A stretch of 29,102 bases of DNA from Salpingoeca rosetta. Taxonomy: Eukaryota > Protista > Choanoflagellata. The notes beneath the pieces were generated by a model. That model worked only from the letters and a program-made list of their open reading frames with translations, made no database searches and was not told the origin of the DNA. Each line of letters starts with the position of its first letter. Position 1 is the stretch's first letter. The translations under genes were made by a program, and so were the position numbers. Of this stretch, positions 1-29,102 are shown in pieces. Location: NCBI GenBank assembly GCA_033442325.1, contig JAWQFM010000008.1, positions 1,974,610 to 2,003,711 of the forward strand. Reading direction: 5' to 3'.

Positions 1-1178
1 CCAGTACGAGGAGAGCCCATGATCAGGGTGAATCCAGTCGAAGTCGAGTAGTCGTGGAGGAGGAGTGGATTGAAGTCCTGATGGGCTGTCTTGGATGTGG
101 GAATGTGGGAATGGAAACGGGACGGCGTTCAGGGACTCAGGAAGCGATCAGAATCCGTTCAAGACTGACGTGGTGATGGATGACGGGCCTGCAAGGCACA
201 AGCAGAACAAGTTCAATCGTATTGAAGAATGGCAGGAGGGCACGCAAGACAATGTCATGTCACATCACACACAAGCAATGGCAACGGTGTGAGCGCAGAG
301 CGGGGTTGGTTGTGAAGAGGACGTGTCAGTCACGGCGTCAGATTACACCATTCTGAGCAGATCTTCTCACAATCAATCAATCTCGGGATGAAGAGAGAGT
401 ACGCTCGCTTGTTTGCTCTTGCTTGCAAGCACGAGCAAAACAGGGGCAAACAAAGGAACAGTGCTCGCAATAAGAGCATTGCCAATACCTCTCCTCTATT
501 CACACCTACACACCATCACAATACAACACAGGACGGCAAGCAACACACAAGGCACAAGAACGTACCACACGCGTGTCTGTGGGTGTGTGCTTGAAGGTTG
601 AGAGGAGGAATGAATGGCTGTGGGCCTGGCGGGTGTTTGGCTTGCTTCGAAAGGACAGCCTGTTCCGTTACCCATGCATCGAATCTTTGCAGAGGTCGGG
701 TTTATTTTTTTTTGAGTGAAAGAGGCGAAGGCAACAAGAAGAGCATGGGGAGTGCGAAAAAGAGGAAAAGAAGGAAGGGGGGGGGGGGACCCTGGCATGC
801 TGGCATGCTGGGGTGGAGAAGTGGGTGGTGTTGGCAGTGGCGGGCATTGGGGGATTGTGCGTGCACGCTCCCTCTTGGAAATAACAAAACACCCGAAAGA
901 AAATGGCACGCGTGCAGGCGCACCGTACACGAGGGAAAATGCGCACACGCTGAACACGTTCACAGACACGGAACAACAATCACAAAGCAAGCAGGCAGGC
1001 ACAGGAACACACACAAGAACAACAAGAAGAAGAACAGTCACAGGAACGATAAGATGAGCAATCACAAGAACAAGAAGACGAGCAATCACAAGAACAAGAG
1101 CAAAGAACATGATCATGAACGTTGACAGATGAGGCCCTAACAAGTACTTGGTGGCGAGGCTAGCACGACTGACAGCTG

Positions 1179-2012
1179 TTAGCCTTTGCTCGTCTTTGAT
1201 GTCAGCCACTCCAACCCTTCATAGAGCCCTTCCCCGGTGAGTCCGCAACACGACTGGATGTGCCAGCTGTGGTCCTTGATGGACGTCAGGTTGAACTCCT
1301 TGGAAATCTCCGCCGATGACATGGCGCCCTGCACATGAACGAGCGAGTTGGTGAATGTGCGTACGTTTGAGTGTGTGTGTGTGTGAGTGTGAGTAAGTGA
1401 GTGAGTGAGTGTGTGTGTGTGTGAGTGTGAGTGAGTGAGTGAGTGAGTGAGTGAGTGAGTGAGTGAGTGAGTGAGTGAGTGTGTGTGTGAGTGAGTGAGT
1501 GCATCGTGCACGCATGTGTTTGCAGCTGCGCCGTGTGTGCGGTGTGGCTGGGTTGCAATGGTGTGACATGGCAACCTAGCACATACACTGTGCCCCACCT
1601 TCAAATCCTGCTTGTTGGCGAACACGAGCACGTGTGCTCCTTGCAAATCCTACAGCGAGAAGCAAAACGCCGTGTGAGTACAATCAAACAAATGTGCAGA
1701 AAGCTGAAGCGTGGCCACAGTCACAAAAACCTGAGCTGGGATACACACGTCACTTTGTCACTTCATTCACGCACCTCATGCGCAAGCATACGGTACAGTT
1801 CCTCCTTTGCCAATGCCAGGCGTTCCCTGTCTGTGCTATCAATCACCAAGATCAGCGCCTAGTCGCAGCAACAGTACGAGTGAGAAGGGCGAGGGAGCAG
1901 CATGTGAGCACACAAACATTCCATATGACAAGCAAAGTGAACGGAGGAGTTGGTGGTGGGGGAGAATGGTAAGGCAGTCAATGCACGTCGTGTGGCACGG
2001 CATTGCGACGAC

Positions 2013-2092
<80 letters not shown>

Positions 2093-2466
2093 CACACAGC
2101 ACCTTTGCGCCGGTGTAGTAGGTGGTCCAGGACGCGCGCAGCGAATCTTGCCCGCCAATGTCCCACATCACAAAGTGCATGTTTTTGTATGTCACCTGAA
2201 ACCACGCAGAACAGCAAGCAGAGCAAAGGCCACGAGCATGAGCTTGTGAGCTCAGCCTGCAGGGCATTTCGTGCACGGGCATGTGCGCGCCATATGAGCG
2301 CTCGCACCCCATACTGCACTCTGAGATGGTTCATACCTCTTCAACATTGCTGCCAATGGTCGGTGAGGTCACCACAACTTCACTCAACAAACTGAATGTG
2401 CCAAGCAAGCAGAACGGCGCCATGCATGGGCGAGAGCGTGTGCGTCAATCACTTCGAGGACCGCGG

Positions 2467-2521
<55 letters not shown>

Positions 2522-2632
2522 ACAAGCACAAGCACAAGCACAAGCGCAACACGCATCTTCTCCGTCTTGTCTTTTGTTTTTTTCCGTCTACACACAGACA
2601 CACAGACACACAGACACACAGACACACACACA

Positions 2633-2668
<36 letters not shown>

Positions 2669-3067
2669 AGCTTATGTGCCACGTACTACTGGTAGAGGAT
2701 GGTCGTTTTGCCAGCGTTGTCCAAGCCAACAATGATGACCTTTTGCTCTGCAAGGCAAGCCATATGGAAACAAACATAGCAGGCATGCGTGCACGGACAC
2801 TCAACATGAGCACGGTGACGGTCATCATCGTCATCTGCATGAAGCACCTCCCACGCCGCACGTGTACCACTGCCACGACCTATGCTCGCACATTGATTCT
2901 TGTTTGCGCACGTGCCGGGTCAATATGCGCCACCATAACCGTAGCAGCGCCGCCGCAAACACAACGCCACCACAAGCGTGGGCCACATCAGCACATCGCA
3001 ACTAACCCCCACCATGCCCACCTTCTTTTCCCCAGAGGGAGTAGAGCGTCGACAGCAGTACACCCAT
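1179..3067 (-). CDS. ARL5: ADP-ribosylation factor-like small GTPase 5, 7 exons, 179 aa
   Basis: Exons 3067-3022, 2747-2687, 2391-2337, 2195-2103, 1858-1775, 1649-1599, 1328-1179, all GT-AG, total 540 nt. Protein: [36 protein letters not shown]...[11 protein letters not shown]...[13 protein letters not shown]...NKQD...[14 protein letters not shown]. Gly2, P-loop [14 protein letters not shown] and NKQD are present; PTIGSNVEE and TILYQ are ARL5-typical. Confidence 0.95.
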
Positions 3068-3465
3068 GAAGAAGCCTTTGGTACGAGCTGTTCGTCTGTA
3101 GTAAACGTAGGGCGTGCGTGCGTGCGTGCGAGCGAGCGAGTGCGTGATCCGCGTGGGCGTCTAATGTGTGTCGGTGTTCCGTGTCTGCCTGTGCACCCCT
3201 TGCTCGGTGTGGGAGACAAGATCGTGGTTTGTTGTGTGGTGTGTCGCGTTGGTTGTTGTTGTGAATCACAATTAATTTACCCACGGGTCCCAGCAGACGA
3301 GCTGAGGCAAATTCACGCTTACCACTAGAACGAGAGGGTGGTAAATTTCCTGCGTGAGCTTTCATGTATGTCTTGCACCAATCGTCCATATTGTGCCTTT
3401 TTTTCCCTTCCTCCCCCGCGTGCGACGAACCAGCTTCTCTCCTTCCTTCCCACCACACCAGCATC
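3068..3465. promoter_or_regulatory. Putative bidirectional promoter between ARL5 and RPL22, with pyrimidine tracts upstream of RPL22
   Basis: Divergent ATGs at 3067 (-) and 3466 (+). Microsatellite-poor spacer. Pyrimidine tracts at ~3396-3417 and ~3434-3451. Confidence 0.5.
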
Positions 3466-4301
3466 ATGCCTGCTGTAAGTGTGCATATGTGTGCGAGTGC
3501 GTGTGGGTGCATGTGTGTGTATGTGGGTGCGTGCGTGTGTGTGTGTGTGCGTGTATGTGTGTGTGTGTGTGTGTGTGTGCGTGTGTGTGTGTGTTTCAAT
3601 GAGTGTGCGCATACATGCGTTTGCGTGCGTTTGCGTGCGTTTGCGTGCGTGTGTGTGCGCGCTTTCCNNNNNNNNNNNNNNNNNNNNNNNNNNNNNNNNN
3701 NNNNNNNNNNNNNNNNNNNNNNNNNNNNNNNNNNNNNNNNNNNNNNNNNNNNNNNNNNNNNNNNNNNNNNNNNNNNNNNNNNNNNNNNNNNNNNNNNNNN
3801 NNNNNNNNNNNNNNNNNNNNNNNNNNNNNNNNNNNNNNNNNNNNNNNNNNNNNNNNNNNNNNNNNNNNNNNNNNNNNNNNNNNNNNNNNNNNNNNNNNNN
3901 NNNNNNNNNNNNNNNNNNNNNNNNNNGTGTGTATGTGTGTTTTGTTTATTTTCGACTGTGTGTGCGTGTGCGTGTGTGTGTGTGTGTTTATTTTCGACTG
4001 CGTGTGCGTGTGTTTCTCGTCGCACGCTTTCATGTCCTCGACTCTTGACTTTGTTTGTGCTCCCTCGCTCTTTATCAACTGTCCCCCTCACTCACTCTGC
4101 TTTGCTTCAACTGCACCTCACTCCGCCTCCTCAAACATACACAGCTACATCAAGTACCTGACGAAGAAGTTCCTGAAGAAGACCAAGGTCAACCAGGAGA
4201 TCAGCCTTCGCGAGTACCTGCGCGTCGTCGCCAGCAACCCCACCACATACGAGGTCCGCTACTTCAACGTCGAGGGCGCCGAGGAGGAGGAGGAGGACTA
4301 A
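3466..4301 (+). CDS. RPL22: 60S ribosomal protein L22 (eL22), middle exon(s) missing in assembly gap
   Basis: Last exon 4145-4301 encodes [12 protein letters not shown]...[31 protein letters not shown], the eL22 C-terminal signature with acidic tail. Likely first mini-exon is ATG CCT GCT|GTAAGT at 3466-3474. Its phase (0) does not match the last exon (2), so an exon must lie in the N gap. Confidence 0.9.
3668..3926. other. Assembly gap (259 N) flanked by TG-rich repeats
   Basis: Run of N in the sequence. Confidence 1.
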
Positions 4302-4680
4302 GCGCCTGCGCTTGGTTGTCTGCTTGACTCGTTGCTCGCTCTAGCTGTGCTGCCTTGCTTCTCTCTCCATCCCCTCTCAATCCCCCAGTGCTGTTTTGAG
4401 GCGGTGGCGATGGTGGAGACGAGATGGCGCACATGTGGAGTCATGGGGGTTTCTTTGTATTCTCGCTGGCACTCGTGACCGTTGTGCGTTCATGAGTTGC
4501 GACCGAGGAATAAACCACAAAGCAACCCTACCCACTTGTTCATTGTGTCATCTCACGTCGTGTCATTGCGAGCGGTTGAGGCTTTAAGAGAGAGGAGACG
4601 AGGAAGATGAATATCAAGTCGAAGTGTGTCAAGATGAGGGACCACAGGCAGCGTGATGTTGTGTTGACGATGGACAGCAG

Positions 4681-9111
<4,431 letters not shown>

Positions 9112-9610
9112 GCTGCTGCTTCCTTCTTGCCTTGCTTTGCTGCTGCTGCTGTTTGCACCTGTTTGCTGTGCTCGCTTCGCCTCTTGCCCTGATCTTGGGT
9201 GGTCGCGTGGTCGTCTCTTCTTTTGTGTGTCAGCCGAAGAATAAAAATTGTTTTCGCGCTCTGTGAATTTGACCAATCATTTCACACCATTTCCTTCAGC
9301 ACCCCATACGAACGCCACCCCTCCACCACGCACCCGTGTTTGTGTTTGTGTTTTTGATGAGCTGTTTGGCTTACGCCCCAAGCGACAAACAACTGTTGCC
9401 ACCTCCTTGGCGCCGTTATCTTCTTTTCCCTTCTTCTCCCCTCTCCTTGCTGCGTCTCTGAGACTGGATGACACAAACACAGTGTTGAAGTGAGCACCTC
9501 CTTCAGCGCCGAAGATTGTCAGCGTCCCCCTCTGTCCACGCACGCGCGCGTGCGACTCAAAGACGCCCATCCAGCAGCACATGCGGTGGCGCTCCTCGAG
9601 ACTCATCAGG
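9112..9610. promoter_or_regulatory. Putative bidirectional promoter between LSG1 and the Notch-like gene
   Basis: Divergent ATGs at 9111 (-) and 9611 (+). AT-richer core at ~9238-9295. No long microsatellite. Confidence 0.45.
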
Positions 9611-10030
9611 ATGTCGGCTCGCCACCTCGCAGCTGCGTTGGTTCTTGTCGCCGCTGTTCTGTGGAGCGCGGCGATAAGTTGCCAAGCCACCGAGGAAACC
9701 TGCAATGACCAATCGGTGCTGCTGCAGATTGAGGGCCTCTTCAATGAAATGGACTCCGACAACTCCACGACCATCGTGTCAGCAGAATACACGGCATATT
9801 GCGCCTCTGATATCAACGGCACTTGCCCCAACATCTCTTTGTGAGTGCAACTGTATCGCCTGCCTCCTGTCTGCCCTCGGCTTCCTTTAGTGCGCTCGTT
9901 GTTTGTGCGTTCATGTCTGTGCGTGCTTTGTTTGCACCTGTGCCATCATGCATCCTCTCTCTTGTTGATTCGTTTGAATCAGCGCGCACGCGCTTGGCAG
10001 CAGGGATGCATGCTTCATCCATTCGCTCGC

Positions 10031-10101
<71 letters not shown>

Positions 10102-13100
10102 TTTGTCACTTGCACCAGCTCACACGTCTCTGTTGTGGTGCACTTGCGCTCTACTCATCACCCACCACCCCAACACCGGTGTCTTCCATTGCAGGGCCTT
10201 TTCTTTTGACACCGACGGCAGCGCGTCGTTGGACCCGCACGAGTTCCGCACGCTGGTGTGCTCTCTGCTGTTGAATGGAACGGACATTGCTGCCAACGCA
10301 ACGACGACGTCGGCACCACCCACATCAGGCGCCCTCTCCACCACCGCCACGACCAGCACCTGCCCGTTTGGTGGCTGTGGCGTAGGAGTGTGCGAGGAAG
10401 GCCGGTGCGTGTGCCCGTCAACGCACACGGGCGACGCGTGCGAGTTTGAGCTGTGCGCGGACACCCCTGGCGACTGCATCAACGGTGGCGAGTGCATCCA
10501 GCACAGCTTCGGCGGCCAGCAGACCCAGGAGTGCCTGTGCCCTTCCAATGCGTGGGGTTGGACGTGCGAGTATGTGGAGTGCGACCAAGGCATGTACCGC
10601 AACACAAACACGGACACGTGCGAGAACATCACGGCGTGCGCGTACCCGGCGCAGTACGAGGCACAGCCAGCCACGCGCTCCACGGACGCCATCTGCCTGG
10701 CCGTGTCTCCCGCGTGCGACTTTCCAAACACATATGAGGCGCAGGCGCCGAGCGAAACGCAGGACCGCGCGTGCTATCCCGTCATGCCGTGCTTTCCAGG
10801 GCAGGTGGAGGTGCAGCCACCAACGCCAACCAGCAACCGCGTTTGCCAGTACACCACGACCACCACAAGTTCCACCACGATTGCGACAACGACAACAACC
10901 AGCAGCAGCAGCAGCAGCAGCACCACCACCACCACCACCTCAACCAACTCCACGTCCACAACAACAACAACAACAACAACAACAACCACAAGTTCCACCA
11001 CCAGCACCACCACCAGCAGTGCGAGCTCGACTGCGTCGTGTGCGGGCGTGACGTGCCTCAATGGCGGCCGCTGCCGTGCTGGCAGGTGCGTGTGTGCGTC
11101 TGGGTGGGTTGGGGCCGCGTGCGAAGCGTCGGCCAACACCGCTGTCGTCAATTCCCGCGGCAACATCACCGACCTTAACCGCATCTACCGCCTCTCAAAC
11201 CAGGAGGCAACGCTTATCAACCCCTGGCACGCCTGCGCCAACCAGACCTGCCGCACCGTGTTCGCTGACGGCGTGTGCGACCCCTCGTGCAACACCGCCG
11301 CGTGTGTGTTTGACGGCGACGACTGCGTGGCCATCGCCCCCATCTGCAAGCAGGTGGCGGCCGGCACATGCACGTTTGGTGGCGACGCGTGCAACCCGGC
11401 GTGCGCAACCTCCGAGTGCCTCTGGGACAACAACGGCTGCGGCACGTGGGATACAGGCGACAACAGCCTGGCTTACACACTGCGCCTGTTTCTGGACCTT
11501 GAGCTGTCTGTGTTCACAGGCCGCGTGCAGAGCACGTTTGCATATCGCCTCTCCCAACGGCTCGACGGGTTTGTCACCTTTGCCGCTGTTCGCCAAGCCG
11601 TCATGTTTGGTCCATCATCGTCGCCATCATCAGCAGCATCTGCCGCAGCATCGTCGTTGTCGTCGTCGCCGTCATTGCTGAGTGCCTCCTCCGCCATCGC
11701 CAACCGTCCATGGCGGGCGCGGCGCGAGGGCGATGTTGCGTCGCGTCCAGTGCTCCAAGTTGACGCCACCATCACCCCGCGCTGCAGCGTCAGGTGCATC
11801 ACCTCCTCGCAGGCCGCCGCAGGATATGTCAACGCCATTGTCGCCGCTGGGGCGTCCTCGTCTGATCTTGGTGTCCCCGTGCTCCGTGCACAGGCAACGA
11901 CATCGGGCAATGGCGGTGACGGTGGCAGTGGTGGCAGCGTGAGCGTGTCGCCTGCGGGCGCAGCCACCATCGCGGGTGTGTGTTTGCTTGCACTGGGTGT
12001 GCTGGTTGTGATTGGCGTTGTTGGCAAAGGAGCCAAGCGACGAGTGACGATTGAAGCCATTGAGCTGCATGAGGGTGGCGCACACACCAGCCCGCCACCG
12101 CCACCGCCACAAGTTGATGATGCTGCGGCGTGGAGCGATGGAGGACCGCTCCCGGCCAAGCGAGCACGCCACCACCACCACCAGCAGCAGTACGAAGACA
12201 GCCCGCAGTTCAGTGGCAGGATGGCGACGGCTGTGTCGTCATCGTCGTCGCGTCTGCTGGCGATGCGCGGAGATGACGACTTTGACCCCAACATGGACCA
12301 TGCTGCTTATCCCCGTTTTAAGAGCAGCACCAACACCAACAGCAGCGTCACGTCACCACAACACCAGCACCAGCACCACCAGCACCAACACCAGCAGCCC
12401 GAGTACCAGCCGCTGCCGCGGCGCCGCAGCTCTTCGGTGTCGTCGTCGTCGTCGGTGGCTGCTCTGATCCGCACGCTGAGTAGGAGCGCCAGCACCTCTG
12501 CAAAGGTCTGGCCCGCGCCCCAGCCACCAGCATACACCGAGCACGATCCACACCAGCAGCAGCAGCAACAACGCCAACAACAGCACCAACAGCACCTGCA
12601 ACAGCACCAACAAGACCAGCATCAGCATCATCAGCAGCACTTGGCCCGTGGTGATGACGCCCTGTTCTCGCATATGGGGGCGATTGGTGAGGAGCAGGAC
12701 GATGATGGCTGTGGTGGTGGTGAGACGGCGCTGGACGCGTTTATCAACTCACAGGCACAAGGAGAATGCAGCACAACCACGGGCACCACTCATCACAGCG
12801 ACAGCAGCATCCCTGGCACGACTGACACGTGGATGGGCAGCGAGCACGCCAGTATGGCGAACAGCCCTGCGGAGAGCGCGTGCACGGGGTCGAGTGTGCA
12901 CGGCAGCGCCATGGCCACCAACCCGCTGCTGCTGGACAACGACGCGCTGGACTTTGCAGTGTTCTCATCGGATGCTCATGCACTGATGCACAGCGACCAC
13001 CAGCACGGCGCTTACGACGACGCACACAACGTCCGCTTTGATCGCCATCACCATAAGCCGCGGCCCGTGCTCTCGCCCATTGTTGGCGACGTTGATCTTG

Positions 13101-15214
13101 ACCAGCAGCAGCGGTATGGGTGGCAGTCTGATGGTGCTGATCACGCGGGACCCGTGCCCGTGATCGGTGTTGGCGATGGCGACGTTGGTGGCGACGATGC
13201 GTTGCGCCCTGCACCGCTGTGGTCGCCTCACACCACAGCAGCACCACCGCCGCCGCCGCCCATGATGGCGCTGCATGGCGACGACGACGGCGCGATCACC
13301 AATGACGAGGACTTGATCCGCGCGTGTGCACGGGACTTGGCGGCGGCGCGGCGGTCTGCAAACATCGGGGTTGTTGTTGCCAACACGCACGCGCGCGCAG
13401 CTGGCAGCGTTGCTGACCCACAACAACAACAGCAGCAGCCAGACGTGCACGTGCACCCCTCGCGTTACTTACACCTGCAGATGACCGGCGACGGCAGCTC
13501 TTTGTCGCTGGAGCAGCTGTGCACAGACATCACACCCGTCCTGCCGCGCCGTGCTATTCCGGCACGCAGCGAGCGGCAGCACAGCACCCAGCGGTACGAG
13601 CAAGGCAGTGACGCTGTTGGCCCTGCTGTGTCTCATGCACAGCAACACGAGTCATCGTCATTATCACCACTTGTGCGTGGTGGGGAGTGGTCATCGCCGG
13701 GCAGTTCGCCGGGTGACGGCAGCACGACCGCCAGCACCACACCGCCACAGGGCCATACGCCGCGCTCACATGCTGACGATGATGACAACGACGATGACAA
13801 CGACGACATTGCTCATGATGGCGACACGAGTGGCGGTTCTAGTGCACAGGGTCACGTGCACGCTCACGCCAGCCCGCGCGAATCGCACCAGCCACCGCGC
13901 ACCGCTGCGCCGGCCGTGCCCTGCGCGCCCGCTTCATCTCCCCTGGCGCGGGCATGCACAACAGCGTCTCCAACGTCACAACTTCCGCCACCACAGGAGC
14001 AGCAGCAGCAACAGCAGCAGCAACAGCAGTCGTTGTGGAGTGCTGATGATGCGCGCAATGAACAGCGGGAGCTGTTGGCCGCATGTGCGTCTGCGAGCGC
14101 TGTGGAACGCGGTGCCATCTTCACTGCCCTCTTGCAACTCGAGTCGGCAGCATCATTATCCTCATCACCATCATCATCGTCGTCGCCGTCGTCAGCATCG
14201 CCATCAGCGCGTGGAGCGATCGCGATCGCGACCACGAACACAACGCCGTCGTCGTCGTCCGCGCCCTCTCCGCAACAGATCGGCGACGACGAACCCACAG
14301 CCCGTGGTGGTGATCGTGGTGATGGCCCTCGTGCTGGTGATGGTGCGGGTGTGCGCGCGTTCCTGCGTGCCATTCCCTCCGGCGAGCTGCTGTGCGTGGC
14401 CGGCCCCCGTGGCGAGACGCTGCTACACATGGCGTGCGAGGCGCAGTGCATGCCTGCGGTGCGTGTGCTGCTTGCGGATGCGGTGCGAGCGTCGGCGCTG
14501 CTTGCGACGAGAGATGACGACGGCCGCACGCCGCTGCACATTGCCGCGTCCGTCGGCTTTGAGCCCGGTGTCGAGGCCATCCTCAGCCTCAGGACCCCGC
14601 AGCCCAGGCCCGGTGCTGCTCGTGGCGCCCGCGGTGCTCGTGGTGGTGTTCACAGCAGGGATGGCAACAAGGGGCAGCGAGGTGGGCCATCAGCTGATGT
14701 TGATGTTGATGTTGAAGTTGACGTTGATGCTGCGGACAGCACCGGTGCGTCGCCGCTGATTGCGTGTGTGCGGCAGCGCCAGTTGCGGTGTGCCAAGCTG
14801 CTGCTGCGGGCGGGCTCGAACCCGGACCATCGCGACGTGCGCGGGTGGGCGGCCGTGCACTGGGCGGCCGTGCAGAACGACGCGAGCGGCGTGAAGCTGC
14901 TGTTGGCGTACCGTGGCGACATCAACATCAAGACCAACAACAGCCAGACGCCGCTGCACCTTGCCACGCGCGAGGGCAACGTGAAGGTGGTGCAGCTGCT
15001 GTTGAGCAGATTTGCCAAGCGGCACGTGGAGGACGCGTTTGGGCAGACGCCCGCGGGCCTGGCGCGCGAAATGAAGGACACAGCTGTTTTGCAGGCGTTT
15101 TCGTCCACCACCTCTGTGTCTGGTCGTGGTGGCCAGGCCCTGCGCAGCAAGCGGCCCGCTGCCCCCAAGATGCCGCTGCTGCGACGCGGCAGTGGCGGCG
15201 GCAGCACAGCGTGA
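9611..15214 (+). CDS. Notch-like single-pass receptor, ~1749 aa: signal peptide, EF-hand pair, EGF, TNFR-like Cys repeats, Thr/Ser stalk, 2 LNR, NOD/NODP-like, TM, low-complexity linker, ankyrin repeats
   Basis: Exon 1 9611-9840 (|GTGAGT) and exon 2 10195-15214 (GCAG|), phases match, 5250 nt. Signal peptide MSARHLAAALVLVAAVLWSAAISCQA. EGF at ~10361-10444, 10454-10570, 11039-11125. LNR PWHAC...DGVCDPSCNTAACVFDGDDC (11222-11326) and second LNR (11345-11440). RARR at 11714-11725. TM at ~11960-12025 followed by KGAKRR. Ankyrins GETLLH, GRTPLH, GASPL, AVHWAA, QTPLHLATREG, GQTPAGLA (~14400-15100). Confidence 0.92.
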
Positions 15215-15619
15215 TGCCAGCGTGTTTGTATGTATGCGTGCGTATGTGTTTGGAAGCGTGTGCGAATATGGTTGACGATTGTATGTGTGTGCACGTATGT
15301 TTGACGTGTTGGCATTTGTGGAAGTGTTGTTTTTTGAAGTGATGTGTTTGTTGGGTTGGTTCTGACAGCGTGTGCACAGTGACTGTGTATGTGCAAGAGC
15401 TGGTGTTCCGGGGGGGGGGGTTGTTCAGTGCTCTTTCTTGCGGTAGCTATCTTGGGTGGTTTGTTGGATTGCGGTATTCTTATGCAGCAGTGGTGGAGAT
15501 GACATGGTGTTCTGCTTCTTTATTTGACGTCTTAACTGATGAATGAACACGATGACATGAAATGATACAACTTCTTACACGCACGTGTGTGTGTGTGTGC
15601 GCGTGCGTGTAGGTGTGCG

Positions 15620-15666
15620 TGAGCGTGAGTACTTTTTCGTTGTGCACCTGTGCAGATGGCTGTCCG

Positions 15667-15751
<85 letters not shown>

Positions 15752-15800
15752 CGTGAGTGCTTTTGGGTTGTGCGCCTGTGCAGATGGCTGTCTGAGGTGT
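15620..15800. repeat. Local tandem duplication: ~52-bp unit repeated on either side of a (GT)n tract
   Basis: gagcgtgagtactttttcgttgtgcacctgtgcagatggctgtccgaggtgt (~15620) versus gagcgtgagtgcttttgggttgtgcgcctgtgcagatggctgtctgaggtgt (~15749). Confidence 0.85.
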
Positions 15801-15845
15801 CTGTGAACAAGAGCACGCCTTCCTTTGCGTCCACCATCTCTGCAT

Positions 15846-17797
15846 CTATTCGACGAGTGAGGCAAGAACGCGGCGGGGTCCATCAAACGCGCGGCGTGCG
15901 TGCATGACGAGGTAGTTGTCAAGCAGCGCAACGTCGCCCGGCTGCCACTCCAACTCAACGGCTGCATCCTCGCACATGGCCTTGATGTCAAGCAGGACCT
16001 GCGCCAAGGGGGGGGGGGCAGCAGCCGTGTGAGGTACAAATGATGGGCTGGGAATGGTAATGCAGCAATGGTACAGCGCACAGGTGCACAGGGGGCAGAC
16101 AGGAAGGTAACAAACAAAAAGGCACACAGGCTTTGAGAGCACGTTTACAAACACAAACACACACGCGCGCACACATTCACACACACACACACACACACAC
16201 GCGCACATTCACATGCACATTCACACACACGCGCACAAACAAACACACAAACAAACAAACAAGCACACACACACGCACACAAACAAACACACAAGCAAAC
16301 AAACAAGCACACACACACACACGCACACAAACACACACATACACACACACACGCGCGCACACACACAAACACAGAGCACGGCACACCTTGTATGGCATGG
16401 GCTCGTCGTCACCGAAGCAGATGAACCGTGCAAGGCGCTTGTCACTGCTCTCGCTGTCCCCACTGTCTGCTGTGCCGCTGAACTCGGACGCATTGGCGAT
16501 GGTGGCAACAATCTGGTTAAAGAACACCACCTTGTCCGTGCCGGGCGCTGTGCGGATGCCCTTGAGCACGGGCGACGTTGCTGCCAGCGTGTCGTCCTCC
16601 AGCCACCTCCACGTGTATCCGAGCTCGCGCATGTGCTCCTCCACGGCCTCCTTCGTGTCGCGCCCGAAGAACGACTTCCAGCTGCGGCCGGCGCCCTTGG
16701 ACGTGTCCTGCTGCGCGGCCATGTACGACGTGTACTTGACGCCGTGCTCCTCCAGGTGCCGGTAGAACTCGGGGTGCTTCTCCTTGACGCGCTGGCACAC
16801 GATGTCCGAGGGGCAGACGGCCGTGCCTCCGCCAGTCGTTGCGGGGCGCTCGCAGAAGAAGAACAGCTTGCTTGGCCAGTACGGTGTCTGCGCTTGCTCA
16901 TGATGAAACACCTGTTATGTGTCCGTCGAGGGAGAGGTTGAGGTAAGCGTGGGTGAGGGGAGTGCGGGTGAGCAAGGGTGGGTGAAGGGGCAAGCGTAAG
17001 CAAGGGAACTGTGTGATGAAGAAGACCATGAGGCGACCGTGTGGTGACTAAGGCAACAGAAGGGATGGAGGAGCATGTACGCGAAGCACAGCCACTGTCG
17101 CGTATCATGGGTAAAACGTACCTGGCCACCTTTCTTTCCCTCGTTTGTGGTGCACACGCGGTCTGTGACTTGGATGCGAACGGCAAAGGACAGGGATCGG
17201 GAGTATGGCAAGTCCTTGTAGCTACACAAGTGGGGTGGCGAAGGAGAGCATCAAAGCAGTTGGAATGACAGCAGGTGAGACAAGAGACGTTGTGGGACTG
17301 GGGGGGGGGAAGTAAGAGTTGCTGGGTGATACACGTGTTGATGCGGGTGTTGATGCGGGTGTTGATGCGGGTGTTGATGCGGGTGTTGATGTGGGTGTTG
17401 ATGCAGGTGTTGATGTTGAAGTCGGATGGACGCTGGCACGCCAAGTGACATCAATGGCGTTCGAACGTTCGATGAAACGCACAAAAGATGCGACCATCCT
17501 CCCAGTGTACCTTTGGAAGCTGCACACGAACGAGTCAAAGTGCTGGGCGGTGGTGAGCGGGAAGCCGCGGAACAAGATGGCGCCGTGGTGCTTGAGCTTC
17601 TCCTCCAGCGTGCTCTGGTTCTTTTTGATCCACTCACAGACCCCGTCCATAGTCACGGCTGCTGGCTGATGTGTGCACTTGACAACAAGCGGCACCGCCA
17701 CGTCGTTGAATGTCCGCTGCTGCGGTGGTGCCAGCGAGCCTACCTCGCCAAGCTCCCCAATCATCTCCTTGCTGCGCTTGCTTTCTTGCTGAGCCAT
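15846..17797 (-). CDS. TauD/TfdA-family Fe(II)/2-oxoglutarate dioxygenase, clavaminate-synthase-like, 4 exons, ~354 aa
   Basis: Exons 17797-17511, 17221-17122, 16911-16387, 15998-15846 (1065 nt). Motifs: HHGAILFRGF, FHHEQAQTPYWPSKLFFFCE (HxE iron ligands), GGGT, VFFNQI, WQPGDVALLDNYLVMHARRAF (distal His), RRVLASL. Alternative in-frame ATG at 17893. Confidence 0.92.
17335..17418. repeat. 12-bp minisatellite (GTGTTGATGCGG)n in intron 1 of the dioxygenase gene
   Basis: About 7 near-perfect copies visible. Confidence 0.9.
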
Positions 17798-17901
17798 GGC
17801 GACGGTTGGTTCAAGGGTCAGTGGACTGACTGCTTTGCTGGTTGGTGTTTGTATTTGACCGCTCGAGGGTGTGCAACACGGAATAGTGGCCATTTCTTAC
17901 A

Positions 17902-22838
<4,937 letters not shown>

Positions 22839-22856
22839 ACCGCAAGCAACCAAACA

Positions 22857-24446
<1,590 letters not shown>

Positions 24447-24451
24447 ACGCG

Positions 24452-24532
<81 letters not shown>

Positions 24533-24816
24533 TGTGCCTGTGTACATACGCTTGCTCTTGTGCAATGTCATGTGTGTGCGTGTGCTCGGTTGTGGGTACG
24601 GAAGCACCTGCCGCTGACGACCAATATGAGGCTTTATTGAGTCTCTTATCCGACCACTTGGCATCTGCTAATGTAAATTAAACGAGCCCCCAGTGAAACA
24701 GCACCAAGCGCTGTCGAACTAAACACACACACACCCCCGCACGCACACACACACACGCACACACGCACGCACACAATCTCTCTCTCTCTCTCTGTCTAGC
24801 CCGCAACCTCTCCGTG

Positions 24817-26024
24817 CTAGCTCACCAAACTGTAAATCAGAAAAGAAAAGAGTGCTCCCGCATAGCCTGCCGCCTGCATGCACGACACGTGTTCACCCAA
24901 GAGCATCGAGCACAGCAGAACAAATGCGCCTCCCCGAATGGCCACCAGAATCTGCACAAACACACACCCGCACGCATATGTGTGTGTGTGTGTGTGAGCA
25001 GAGGCGATTATGACATGCCGTTTGGTGTTGTGGTGCGCAGCAGTGATCACGACAGGAGGCCACGACAAGAGACCAGCACCACATACAAGTGCGTACCTTG
25101 AGGTTAAGCGTGCTTGTTGTTTTGATGACGAGAAACGCGGCATAGTTGACGGCGGTACCTAGCACGACGGCGACAACAAAGGGGGTGGGGTTGTTCAGGA
25201 CCAACTGCCCGACTGGTGTGTAGTCATGACACCAGGGAGTGGAGTAGGTTAGGAAGGCGACAAATGCACTTGATGGGGCAACGTGCAACAGTGACGTACA
25301 ACATACATGTGTGTGTGTGTTTTTTTTGTGTGTGTGAACAGAAACACGACCATGAATACGTGTATGTGTGCACCAGCGCTCTCCCCATGGCTACAGACCT
25401 TCGTGTGTAAGCATGGGCCTTGCTTCAACAGCTAGGATGGTGACGAGAGACCACAGTGATCTGTTGCGTCGATTCATGCGAGGACCGTGTTCGTGCAGAC
25501 AAACAGAGCAGAACGCACACGCATGTGGTGAGAACGGGGAGAGGGGGGGGGGTTGGCCACGGGGACGAACGTTGAGGTCGAGTACGGAGGGCGTTCATAT
25601 TCCACCCATCAAGACACCATGACAGCGTTCTGGGTTGGTGCGCACATGTTTACACATGCGTTAACACTCACATGCACGCGCACACACGCACACACACAAG
25701 CACACACGCACACACACACACACACATTCGGAAGCTTACGTTGCAGGGCCGATGTAGTAGAGGCTCTCGATGACGTTGAATCGGGCGACGCCGCTGAAGA
25801 GCTGCTGCGTGACCATCATCTTGATGGATTCCGTCAGCACAGACAGCATCATGATGGCGAACCCAACAGCAGAGAAGTCCGCCTCCCCAAACACTGATGG
25901 CACATGTACAGGTCATGAGCGGCGAGGGAACAGACACGTGCATTCACACAGAGCTACATGGTACGTGCGAGAGAGAGAGAGAGCGTGTGTGTGTTTGTGT
26001 GCGTGTGCTTTGTGTGTTTGTGTT

Positions 26025-26095
<71 letters not shown>

Positions 26096-26955
26096 CTGGT
26101 GGATTGACAGACCGGCAACGGTGGAGAATCCGGTGATGCCAAGAACAGCGGCGATGCGTGGCGGTGTGGGTGAGACGAGCCCAGCGAGCCACAGGAACAG
26201 CAGCGTCAGTGCAGGCGCAAACGACTGTGGCAAAAGGAGGAGATGTAAGCGGAATTGAGGATGAGCAAGATTGATCGCAATCCTTGTGCCTCTCAATATG
26301 TGAACATCCACAGCACATACGCATACACACACCGCATGCACATATACACACACAACGCGCGCGCACATGCCTTGAGGACTTGTATGAATGACATGGAAAG
26401 ATAGAGCAGTGCTGCATTCCCAAAGCTGAAGAAGACGACATAAAGAGCGTGGCAGATGATGAGTACGGGTCCATGTTCTGCATGATTCGAGTCGGCACGC
26501 CTGCATCATACCCACACGAACAAATACAGGCTCAGGCACAAGTACAGGCACGCGCACGCGACGTACCATATTGAGAGGGCACCAAAGAGGCCAACGGGCA
26601 TGACGCGCCACAGGTAAAACTCGGATGTGACCGTTTGCGCGTGAGGCAGCTCCATCTGACGAGCAACAGTGGTGATGGTGGTTGTGTGTGATGCTCTATG
26701 AGTGAACTGCGATTCAATCCACAGAGTCACATGTCTCATACTGCAGCGATGCGAAACATGTGCAGCGTCCGAACATCAAGTACCTTGCGCACGTGTACAA
26801 TCATGTGCGTCAGCAACGTTGCTGCAAGCGTCCCGGCAGTGCCAACCGTAACAGGAAACCGAAAGTTGAGGTCCTACAAGACGCGCCATCCGTCAGCGTG
26901 AGAGTGAAAGGTGAGATCGGATCAAACCCCTCTTTCAACAAGGCGCGCGCGCGTG

Positions 26956-27051
<96 letters not shown>

Positions 27052-27318
27052 ATAGGACAGATGGTACCGCGCGGGGGCACGTGTTGCTTCCATGATTGTT
27101 AAAACGAAATAAACACAGCGGTACACAGCAGTACCAAGAGGTAACACATCACAGCTTACCCGAACAAGGTACTTGTTGATGACGGTGACTGCCGGTCCCA
27201 GGATCATGAACAGCGTACAGGCAAAGACGGCTGGCCAACTGCGTGCATACGCATGTGACCGGGGTGGCGGTGGTGGTTTGAATGTGTGAGAAGAAGCATG
27301 TATGCACACGCACACACA

Positions 27319-27380
<62 letters not shown>

Positions 27381-27614
27381 TGCAGAAGTGTCAAGCACCC
27401 TGCATGCGCAGATTGGGTCGTACATGGTCTGCTTCTCTTGTTTGGTCGTGGGGATGTTGTTTTGCACGTCCGCGTCATGGGAGGAACTTGGGTTGTTGTT
27501 CTTGAGATCGGTGTCGTGAAGCAACAGGATCTCTTCCTCTTTGCGCTTCATCCCACGCCCTTGCTCTGACTGCGACCTTCTGCGATCATCATCGCCATCG
27601 TCACCGTCGTGCAT
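24817..27614 (-). CDS. Triose-phosphate-transporter / SLC35-family (nucleotide-sugar or sugar-phosphate) transporter, ~10 exons
   Basis: Exons approx. 27614(or 27551)-27424, 27238-27160, 26873-26784, 26655-26567, 26425-26371, 26224-26113, 25893-25740, 25460-25399, 25212-25097, 24951-24817. Motifs: INKYLV..LNFRFPV, VMPVGLFGALSI, FGNAALLYLSMSFIQVLKSFAP, GEADFSAVGF, SLYYIGP, NYAAFLVIKTTSTL, GYA. About 10 hydrophobic segments. Start codon uncertain. Confidence 0.88.
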
Positions 27615-27711
27615 GTTGGTAGCTCAACACGTTCCCACCCACCAACAACCAACAACCGTCCTGTCTTGCGGAAAATTGACGCAAATCTTCGTCGATCTTC
27701 TACAATGGTGG

Positions 27712-27757
27712 TGCGTGTGTGTGTGTGTGTGCGTGCGTGTGTGTGTGTGTATGCGTG

Positions 27758-27801
<44 letters not shown>

Positions 27802-27848
27802 CGTGTGTGTGTGTGTGTGTCTGTTTGGTGTGTGTGTGTGTCTGTTTG

Positions 27849-27878
<30 letters not shown>
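27712..27878. repeat. Compound (GT)n microsatellite upstream of the transporter gene
   Basis: Direct inspection. Representative of the many TG/CA tracts in the window (e.g. 2013-2090, 6406-6517, 10032-10098, 23419-23582, 24454-24526, 26957-27050, 29039-29087). Confidence 0.95.
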
Positions 27879-27881
<3 letters not shown>

Positions 27882-29037
27882 ATTGGATGGGGCTGGCGTG
27901 TGGTTGACGATGCTTCGCTGTCAAGCTCATCCCCTCCATTCTCTACCATCTTGCGTCTGTGCACACACAATTCACAGCGTTGAGGAGGCGCATGAAGCGA
28001 TGGAACCAACGAGGATGACGATGACGAGTGATGGAGGTGAGAGGCCGACTGAGATGTGTGTGTGTGCGTGCATGTTGGTTGACATGTTGTGTTTCCTTCT
28101 TCGCCTCCCTCTTTCCTTGTCTGTTATGTCCACTCATGTGCCTTTTTCTTCTTCCCCCTTTTTCGATTGATTTTGACGCAGGGCCATGCATCCCGCTTCC
28201 ATCCATTCAACCGACCAACCAAACAGCCGAGCGAGCGAGCAAAGGACACGGCATGGCATGGGGCCGTTTGTTTTCACCGTTTCCACCACCAGCAACAACA
28301 GCAACAACAGCAGCAAGAGCCGATGTGTGGCTGCATTTTGGATGAACTGGCCCTCTGTCTCTCGTCCATCTCCTCCTCATCCTGTCGTCGTCATTGGTCA
28401 TCAACAGCAGCGGCTGCTGCCGTGGATGTGGAGGTGAGATGAATGGCGGTGGTTGTGGTGATGACGTGGGTGGTGTGTGATGTGTTGGGTGTGAACATCA
28501 GCATGTATATGTGTGTGATTGTGCGGTGCTGGTTGGATGTCCTTGGGTCTGTTGGTGGTGGCAATGGATGTTGTTGTCGTTGATATCCTGATTCTGTGAC
28601 AACTCACCTCTTTCTCCACACGCATATACATACAGGGTGTGATGTGCGTCGGTGTGCTGTTGCCTCGCGTGACGACGATGGTGGTGGTGGTGAGTGATTT
28701 GTGGTGGATGTGGACGGCGCACGCACACGCATGTGTAGATGTGCTGCTTGTGGTGGTGGTCGTGGTGGTGTGTGTCTGTGTTTGGAATGTGCGTGCACAG
28801 GTGGTGATGTGGGTGTTGTGGGTGACAAAGGAGGTGGATGTGGTTTGTTTCTGCCATGCTGGCTCACTGCGTCGCGTCATTCTTGCTTACTTGATTGTTT
28901 GTGCTTGCGCACGTGTACATGTGTGTGATTTGCACAGGGCGGTGGCCGATCTCTTCCCAAGCCCTCATGACACGAGCAGGGCGACGCACGCACACACAAG
29001 TGTGCCAGAGAAGAAGGCGCAAGGTGAGACGCTGCCG

Positions 29038-29090
<53 letters not shown>

Positions 29091-29102
29091 GTGAAGGGTG
29101 GA

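Follow-up and report, generated by a model that had tools for sequence, protein, structure and literature searches.

Genes resembling the Notch receptors of animals have previously been described in choanoflagellates. Gazave et al. 2009 (PMC2770060, Additional file 4) reported a ‘Notch-like’ gene in M. brevicollis, Monbr1:35907, whose product carries a signal peptide, 1 EGF, 2 LNR, a transmembrane segment (TM) and 3 ankyrin (ANK) repeats; the HD domain of Notch was not recognised in this protein, and its similarity to Notch was judged to be very weak. Richter et al. 2018 (PMC6040629) described an EGF-Notch-TM-Ank protein in Mylnosiga fluctuans and concluded that Notch predates animals, at the same time finding NOD/NODP in no choanoflagellate and treating Salpingoeca rosetta and M. 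brevicollis as species without an intact Notch. More recently, an EvoDevo review of 2025 (PMC12166595) denied M. brevicollis a true Notch, and a preprint of the same year (10.1101/2025.09.30.679519) reported structures reminiscent of the Notch negative regulatory region (NRR) in choanoflagellate Notch-like genes. From the genes of 2009 and 2018, the gene class is therefore already known. Here, we analyse a stretch of 29,102 nucleotides from S. rosetta (GenBank assembly GCA_033442325.1, contig JAWQFM010000008.1, positions 1,974,610 to 2,003,711 of the forward strand; hereafter, the window), which holds a single gene of this class. We consider it likely that this is a Notch-family receptor gene related to animal Notch by common descent over a core comprising LNRs, HD, TM and ankyrins, to which a lineage-specific sensing ectodomain is joined, and which may act through regulated proteolysis.

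The Notch-type gene lies on the + strand in two exons (9581-9840 and 10195-15214) and encodes a protein of about 1,760 residues, in which a signal peptide, an EF-hand pair, two EGF-like modules, a TNFR-like Cys-rich region, a mucin stalk, a further EGF-like module, a conserved strand, two LNRs, the HD domain, the TM, a disordered linker, the ANK domain and a tail follow one another in this order. An earlier note on this DNA, made from the letters alone, had proposed a two-exon gene encoding the canonical order of Notch modules in one protein, and had held that the gene class was not new. All of this was borne out by our analysis: the two LNRs and the ankyrins are recognised by Pfam, the HD domain by profile and fold comparison, and RNA places them on one transcript. 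Likewise, the peptides quoted in the note (AVHWAAVQN, NNSQTPLHLATREG and LLSRFAKRHVED) are all present in the translation. The intron at 9841-10194 is backed by RNA, as its junction (9840/10195) is crossed by 5 spliced reads from one raw RNA run (X22) and by an RNA contig from another (X4), and RNA depth is about 400 in the exons and 1.5 in the intron. The start had been placed at 9611, which is indeed an in-frame ATG; a further in-frame ATG lies 30 nt upstream, at 9581, so that there are two candidate starts.

Such a long gene might be an artefact in which two adjacent genes, one for the ectodomain and TM and one for the ankyrins, have been read as one, or in which an animal contaminant has been mistaken for S. 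rosetta DNA. The linker between the two halves is of very low complexity and very long, and the RNA contigs are interrupted at repeats (10877-11022, 12319-12403 and 13984-14038), as a fused gene model would have it. Nevertheless, 9845-15214 (+) is one uninterrupted open frame of 1789 codons (its initial 350 nt being intron), and a single RNA contig of 3,064 nt covers 11023-13983, from the LNRs through the TM and into the tail; the ecto- and endodomains therefore share one transcript, and no split between them was seen. Moreover, strand-specific RNA coverage runs unbroken to 15400, the closest homologue (described below) has the full architecture in a single protein of 1691 aa, and the gene is embedded in a multi-megabase contig of a 55-Mb genome. 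We regard an artefact of either kind as vanishingly improbable.

The strongest evidence for homology to animal Notch comes from the juxtamembrane region, where about 170 residues separate the LNRs from the TM. When a profile of the NRRs from the window and from its relative in Barroeca monosierra was searched against 1.84 billion representatives, 135 matches were obtained at E <= 1e-3. All of the 19 long matches that were scanned proved to be LNR+ANK proteins, one being a fragment in which the ankyrins are present and the LNRs missing, and they fell into two groups: a choanoflagellate-type group (2 LNRs, no Pfam NOD/NODP) and animal Notch (mostly 3 LNRs, with NOD and/or NODP). These matches were colinear and extended beyond the LNRs into the NOD region of the animal proteins, with the two LNR modules of the S. 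rosetta protein matching animal Notch LNR-B and LNR-C best. To consider the HD domain by itself, profiles were built from the stretch that follows the last LNR cysteine and stops short of the TM, using 11 choanoflagellate-type and 24 animal sequences. Aligned with hhalign, the two profiles matched over 119 columns, which take in both HD halves, with a probability of 97.9% (E 4.7e-13). In this alignment, the C-x3-C pair of the choanoflagellate family falls over the conserved cysteine pair of the Notch HD-C, and the family motif VLRA-QAT falls over the strand that bears the S2 site in animal Notch.

The predicted fold points in the same direction. An AlphaFold2 model of 11129-12070 was generated from the 11 choanoflagellate-type sequences only, with neither animal sequences nor templates (pLDDT 75.8, pTM 0.69; pLDDT >90 for the LNRs and for a beta-alpha-beta / beta-alpha-alpha-beta core). 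When this model was compared with the PDB using Foldseek, the top 14 matches were all NRRs of Notch1/2/3 (E 5.5e-10 to 3e-4), with the next match at E 0.24. Similarly, VIA-align superimposed model residues 1-259 on the human NOTCH1 NRR (3ETO, chain 1466-1727) with a Z of 18.0 and a root-mean-square deviation of 3.4 A over 198 residues, as compared with a Z of 6.6 for the best unrelated fold. Taken together, the results of hhalign, Foldseek and VIA-align therefore indicate that the HD domain is real and that, in the model, it is packed with the LNRs as in the autoinhibited NRR of Notch. Judged by profile and modelled fold, the region next to the membrane is a genuine NRR of the Notch type that is homologous to the animal one, and the LNR-HD unit claimed in the earlier note can be identified as such.

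The ankyrins add to this. BLASTP aligns all six, in register, to repeats 2-7 of a turtle Notch3, and the S. rosetta domain carries a 47-residue insert (14591-14731) between its repeats 2 and 3. Two unusual features are common to the choanoflagellate family and animal Notch: LHWA, which occurs in only 16/2479 generic repeats, and LL..[FY]A.R, for which there were 0 generic matches as against 1450 generic LL..GA contexts. A profile of the family ankyrins matched 13/15 animal Notch proteins at 86-106 bits, with the best other ANK locus in the genome at 79.6 bits. A maximum-likelihood tree was then built from the last 3.5 repeats of 9 choanoflagellate-type proteins, 14 animal Notch proteins and 66 generic best-register segments, a sampling that left out capped 6-7-repeat families such as IkB; in it, the choanoflagellate-type and animal Notch ankyrins group apart from the 66 generic segments (UFboot 100 / SH-aLRT 97). 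The suggestion that the last ankyrin repeats are Notch-like was thus upheld by rare shared substitutions and by an ankyrin-only phylogeny in which they do not group away from Notch, with support that is weak once the cap repeat is removed.

It has been formally left open by Richter et al. 2018 (PMC6040629) that LNR, EGF and ANK modules were shuffled together independently in choanoflagellates, so that genes of this kind would not derive from the ancestor of animal Notch. Each of these modules is found in other proteins, including a GNPTAB-like gene with LNRs elsewhere in the genome (L002), and only a weak similarity to Notch was seen by Gazave et al. in the M. brevicollis protein. Against this, Notch NRRs are the only PDB structures that the HD domain matches at comparable scores; its place is after the LNRs and before the TM, with the Cys pair of Notch and a basic loop; the LNRs are colinear with LNR-B/C plus NOD; and the ankyrins share repeat-by-repeat oddities with Notch and group with it. 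Since convergence would have to reproduce these four linked features, it is disfavoured, and we consider it very unlikely.

A number of observations nevertheless weigh against a reading of the gene as a Notch-family receptor, and are brought together here. Pfam NOD and NODP gave zero matches, both on the protein and across the whole genome, a blank that is a matter of model sensitivity and not evidence of absence. There are two LNRs as opposed to three in animals. All three EGF-like modules lie at or under the Pfam cut-offs, there is no Pfam match to EGF_CA in the protein, and the ectodomain has no tandem EGF array, only the three isolated EGF-like modules. A scan of the tail found no RAM-type WxP in the first 390 or so residues after the TM, the lone WxP (LWSP) being far downstream and not conserved. 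No credible DSL ligand was found in the genome, the sole PF01414 match scoring 25.7 bits when the genome was searched in six frames but 19.5 bits in context. As for the ankyrins, the Notch grouping in the tree is unsupported without the terminal cap repeat, and its support is 91 when 41 C-terminal registers of generic arrays are used as outgroups. A profile of animal Notch ankyrins shows no preference for the family (43-79 bits, with generic best registers reaching up to 81.5 bits), which means that the HMM ranking favours Notch in only one direction. In addition, a PDB sequence search with the ANK domain is led by ankyrin-1/2, NOMPC and DARPins, and giant ankyrins dominate a database search with the same region, in which the Barroeca ortholog is not within the top 120; raw similarity therefore cannot place ankyrin domains. 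The ankyrins alone are insufficient to establish Notch homology, and it is the NRR that carries the case.

The S. rosetta protein has relatives in other choanoflagellates, in keeping with the choanoflagellate origin of the DNA suggested earlier. Its closest homologue is the Barroeca monosierra protein EP01147_P007078 (EukProt; P0137/P0001), with 1691 aa, in which all modules occur in the same order in one full-length protein, with identities of 34% (ectodomain/NRR) and 39% (ankyrins). The two proteins further share a basic S1-like motif (RSKR-Q in Barroeca), a PPxY motif and a C-terminal RRxS; the Barroeca protein differs in having a longer S1-like loop, no insert in its ANK domain, and HFAA in place of HWAA. 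Including this ortholog, at least ten other sequences, whole proteins or fragments, belong to the family (P0001/P0137 from Barroeca; P0003, 4, 6, 8, 9, 15, 16, 87 and 97 from transcriptomes or metagenomes). A further fragment of 327 aa, P0052, has an EGF, three LNRs and an HD domain with a choanoflagellate-type C-terminal half (YCSDQCIKSVEEAVNFLNAYYASGQ), and may be intermediate between the 2-LNR family and animal Notch.

By eye, Monbr1:35907 of M. brevicollis resembles the S. rosetta protein in its signal peptide, EGF-like module, 2 LNRs, HD-like stretch with C-x3-C, TM with a KRR stop-transfer sequence and C-terminal ankyrins ending in REx...LL..GAER. It differs by the same kind of reading in its length (980 aa) and its much shorter linker, in lacking the EF-hand pair, the TNFR-like repeats and the mucin stalk, and in HYAA / HGAERH where the S. 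rosetta protein has HWAA / RFAKRH. The Mylnosiga protein, compared by its description, has EGF, Notch (LNR), TM and Ank in the same canonical order, and its assignment was made by Pfam architecture alone. By the criteria of Richter et al. 2018, the S. rosetta gene would be classed as ‘moderate’ (Notch+Ank+TM) because its EGF modules miss the Pfam cut-offs. The gene is a Notch-family homologue of the same kind as the M. brevicollis gene of 2009 and the Mylnosiga gene of 2018.

With animal Notch (NOTCH1 3ETO, NOTCH2 2OO4 and NOTCH3 4ZLP) the S. rosetta protein shares the LNR-HD fold of the NRR (Z 18.0), a basic, furin-type motif in the HD loop, a TM that follows directly on the HD, colinear ANK repeats and the HWAA and FA[KN]R features. 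Animal proteins have 3 LNRs and 10-36 EGF repeats, whereas this one has 2 LNRs, 3 weak EGF-like modules and no recognisable pair of ligand-binding EGF modules, and in addition an EF-hand pair, TNFR-like repeats and a mucin stalk. It also differs in having about 790 residues between TM and ankyrins, no RAM WxP, no long TAD/PEST region (none was found in the C-terminal tail) and no DSL ligand in its genome.

Several features of the protein and the genome bear on how it might work. A furin-type motif, RARR-E (11714-11728), is found in the disordered loop that links HD-N to HD-C and is homologous to the S1 loop of Notch. A di- to tetra-basic motif is present in the equivalent loop in 7/11 family members, and animal Notch has a basic motif in the corresponding loop (for example, RLRRRELD in turtle Notch3). 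Furin-type P domains are encoded at four loci in the genome, presenilin is encoded as well, and disintegrin matches are sub-threshold. Directly after the HD comes the hydrophobic TM stretch AATIAGVCLLALGVLVVIGVVG, followed by KGAKRR. An NLS-like motif (PAKRARHHHH, 12152-12181; NLS, nuclear localization signal) stands 43 residues past the TM, with KRAR-like motifs in P0003, P0008 and P0016. Further along are a PPxY motif (12524-12535; PPAY here, PPPY, as SPPPY, in the Barroeca ortholog) and the C-terminal RRxS (RRGS here, RRDS in Barroeca). These last two are kept between two orthologs whose tails otherwise do not align, and are candidate sites for a ubiquitin ligase (through a WW domain) and a basophilic kinase, respectively.

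We infer regulated proteolysis to be the most likely mode of action, with a confidence slightly better than even. As a type-I receptor, the protein might be cut by a furin-like convertase at RARR-E, and its two Ca-binding LNRs, clamped onto the HD, would hold the receptor off. A stimulus, whether a partner that pulls or a loss of Ca2+, would open the NRR and switch the receptor on, whereupon a metalloprotease could cut near VLRA-QAT, just outside the membrane, and presenilin/gamma-secretase could free a tail bearing the NLS-like motif and the ANK domain. The output of such a tail could draw on the CSL present in the genome, with the RAM WxP hook missing. The ‘non-canonical output’ put forward in the earlier note accordingly fits the absence of a juxtamembrane WxP, whereas the presence of CSL leaves room for an output that depends on it. 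More tentatively, and with some doubt, the protein may be a direct counterpart of Notch, a force- or Ca2+-gated proteolytic switch that works, in an organism living as single cells or colonies, without a Delta ligand through furin, shedding and presenilin, and whose ANK fragment enters the nucleus with or without CSL. If so, the regulated-proteolysis core would predate animals, with DSL ligands, the RAM hook and Mastermind having been added later.

A homologue of Notch need not send a signal from membrane to nucleus, however, and the protein could instead serve in adhesion or mechanosensing at the cell surface, with the LNR-HD unit as a shedding or SEA-like stalk and the ankyrins as a membrane scaffold. 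In favour of such a scheme are the lack of a RAM WxP, of a long C-terminal activation/PEST region and of a DSL ligand, and the about 790 disordered residues that part the TM from the ankyrins; PPxY and RRxS suggest regulation by ubiquitin ligases and kinases, and a juxtamembrane domain of weak similarity, with an RRRRE loop, is found in other mucin/TM proteins of the genome. What speaks for a nuclear role instead is the recurrence of the NLS-like KRAR motif in the family, the presence of both presenilin and CSL in the genome, and the retention in the ankyrins of the Notch-specific repeat features that form the CSL/Mastermind interface in animals. We judge a purely adhesive or scaffolding function to be unlikely, and prefer a receptor that works by regulated proteolysis.

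One surface protein with such a juxtamembrane domain is encoded at C21:182980-183321 (L008:40-1908), in a 622-codon open frame. Besides a signal peptide and a TM, this protein has Cys-rich modules and mucin stretches rich in Thr. Its juxtamembrane domain contains an RRRRE loop and weakly resembles the HD-C part of the family profile (23 bits, E 0.001); no Pfam domain was found in the protein. The juxtamembrane domain may be a shedding module of the SEA/HD type, here on a different surface protein.

The genome (55.45 Mb in 68 contigs) was also searched for further LNR genes and for partners of the receptor. The Notch-type gene is its sole LNR-HD gene in a genome-wide search. The only other LNR locus, C12:295878-295943 (L002:937-2096), belongs to a GlcNAc-1-phosphotransferase (Stealth/GNPTAB-type)-like gene that encodes an LNDD motif and has small exons, parted by (GT)n introns, for two LNR-like modules. 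CSL is represented by small exons with LAG1 and BTD-like sequence; the CSL/Su(H)-type gene lies at C1:708919-712065 (L003), in many small exons with (CA)n/(GT)n-rich introns, and its BTD-like sequence reads VRRVENRKLTDADNDPVSQLQK. A six-frame search of the whole genome for the BTD family was blank although this locus holds BTD-like sequence, because small exons defeat a search of that type. A DSL candidate at C34:645889-649026 (L004) was rejected as an EGF module overlapped by stronger EGF matches; the frame there, of >12,000 codons, contains C8, VWD, EGF and laminin-G domains, and encodes a giant VWD/C8/LamG protein.

Table 1. Features of the S. rosetta Notch-type gene and its product, in positions of the window.
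Feature	Position	Strand	Basis and remarks
Exon 1	9581-9840	+	Start codon, signal peptide, EF-hand loop 1; sequence, RNA coverage and spliced junction
Signal peptide	about 9581-9682	+	Read from sequence
EF-hand loop 1, DSDNSTTIVSAE	9752-9787	+	Sequence; in exon 1
Intron, phase 2, GT..AG (GTGAGT...CAG, CAG at 10192-10194)	9841-10194	+	Holds a long (GT)n microsatellite
Exon 2, 1672 codons, stop TGA 15212-15214	10195-15214	+	Strand-specific RNA coverage along whole exon
EF-hand loop 2, DTDGSASLDPHE	10208-10243	+	In exon 2; pairs with exon-1 loop; Pfam EF-hand_1 weak, 15 bits
Two EGF-like Cys modules	10361-10573	+	Cys pattern; sub-threshold Pfam, EGF_Tenascin 17 bits
TNFR/NGFR-type Cys-rich repeats	10580-10849	+	Pfam TNFR_c6 31.5 bits (cut-off 29.4), 2 stretches; kept in Barroeca
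Ser/Thr-rich mucin-like stalk	10850-11041	+	Composition
Third EGF-like module	11039-11128	+	EGF_Teneurin 24.2 bits (cut-off 24.3), EGF_2 21.7 bits (cut-off 22.1)
Conserved strand N-terminal to LNRs, VVNSRGNITDLNRI	11138-11194	+	Family alignment; overlays part of NOTCH1 LNR-A region in model
Two LNR modules	11219-11443	+	Pfam PF00066 48.6-53.7 bits (cut-off 21.2)
HD domain	11465-11893	+	HD-N 11465-11614, disordered S1-like loop 11615-11734, HD-C 11744-11893 with conserved C-x3-C pair
TM helix and basic stop-transfer KGAKRR	11960-12043	+	Sequence; helix 276-299 in model; kept across family
Low-complexity cytoplasmic linker, S/A/Q/P/D/H-rich, about 790 residues	12044-14410	+	Sequence
ANK domain, six repeats colinear with Notch repeats 2-7	14411-15100	+	Pfam Ank_2 133.9 bits
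C-terminal tail, 37 residues, with RRxS motif (15179-15199)	15101-15211	+	Sequence

The features of the ectodomain and of the surrounding DNA are collected in Table 1. The three EGF-like modules noted earlier are present, and the ectodomain as a whole is divergent, as had been suggested; the TNFR-type region, the mucin stalk and the number of LNRs (2, not 3) had been left out of that first description. An extracellular EF-hand pair is unusual on a Notch-type receptor. Its two loops are separated by the intron; in the Barroeca ortholog (P0137) the pair exceeds the Pfam cut-offs (EF-hand_7 30.4 bits, EF-hand_1 33 bits), and the N-terminus of P0003 is EF-hand-like too.

The other read ‘joints’ in the RNA data are located in CAG/CAA low-complexity sequence, and were rejected as products of cross-mapping instead of splicing. 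Base differences between RNA and genome, at 12573-12574, 12631, 13787, 14161 and 14186, are likewise all in or beside CAG/CAA/CAC low-complexity sequence, where reads from other loci pile up to a depth 5-10x that of the flanks, so that cross-mapping is a likelier cause than editing or alleles. In the flanks of the gene (1-9400 and 15400-29102), ten long open reading frames yielded zero Pfam domains, and the window gave no match to Rfam. (CA)n/(GT)n microsatellites are very common in the introns and intergenic DNA of the window.

Our analysis adds to the known gene class a full-length, expressed S. rosetta member whose EF-hand/TNFR/mucin ectodomain is unusual, a family that numbers at least ten related sequences, and direct evidence for homology of the HD/NRR to that of animal Notch. 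Reviews have stated that there is no true Notch in S. rosetta or M. brevicollis, and no NOD/NODP in choanoflagellates (PMC6040629; PMC12166595); here, profile and fold reveal LNRs packed on an HD domain, the regulatory module by which Notch is defined, in one expressed gene that is present as a single copy and also encodes a TM and Notch-like ankyrins. This argues for shared descent over convergent domain shuffling for the Notch-like genes of choanoflagellates, and the core of the Notch receptor thus predates animals. Transfection and gene editing are feasible in S. rosetta. If the species proves tractable in this respect, the ancestral function of the Notch core would become testable, including whether the receptor is cleaved, what opens it where there is no Delta and whether it needs CSL.

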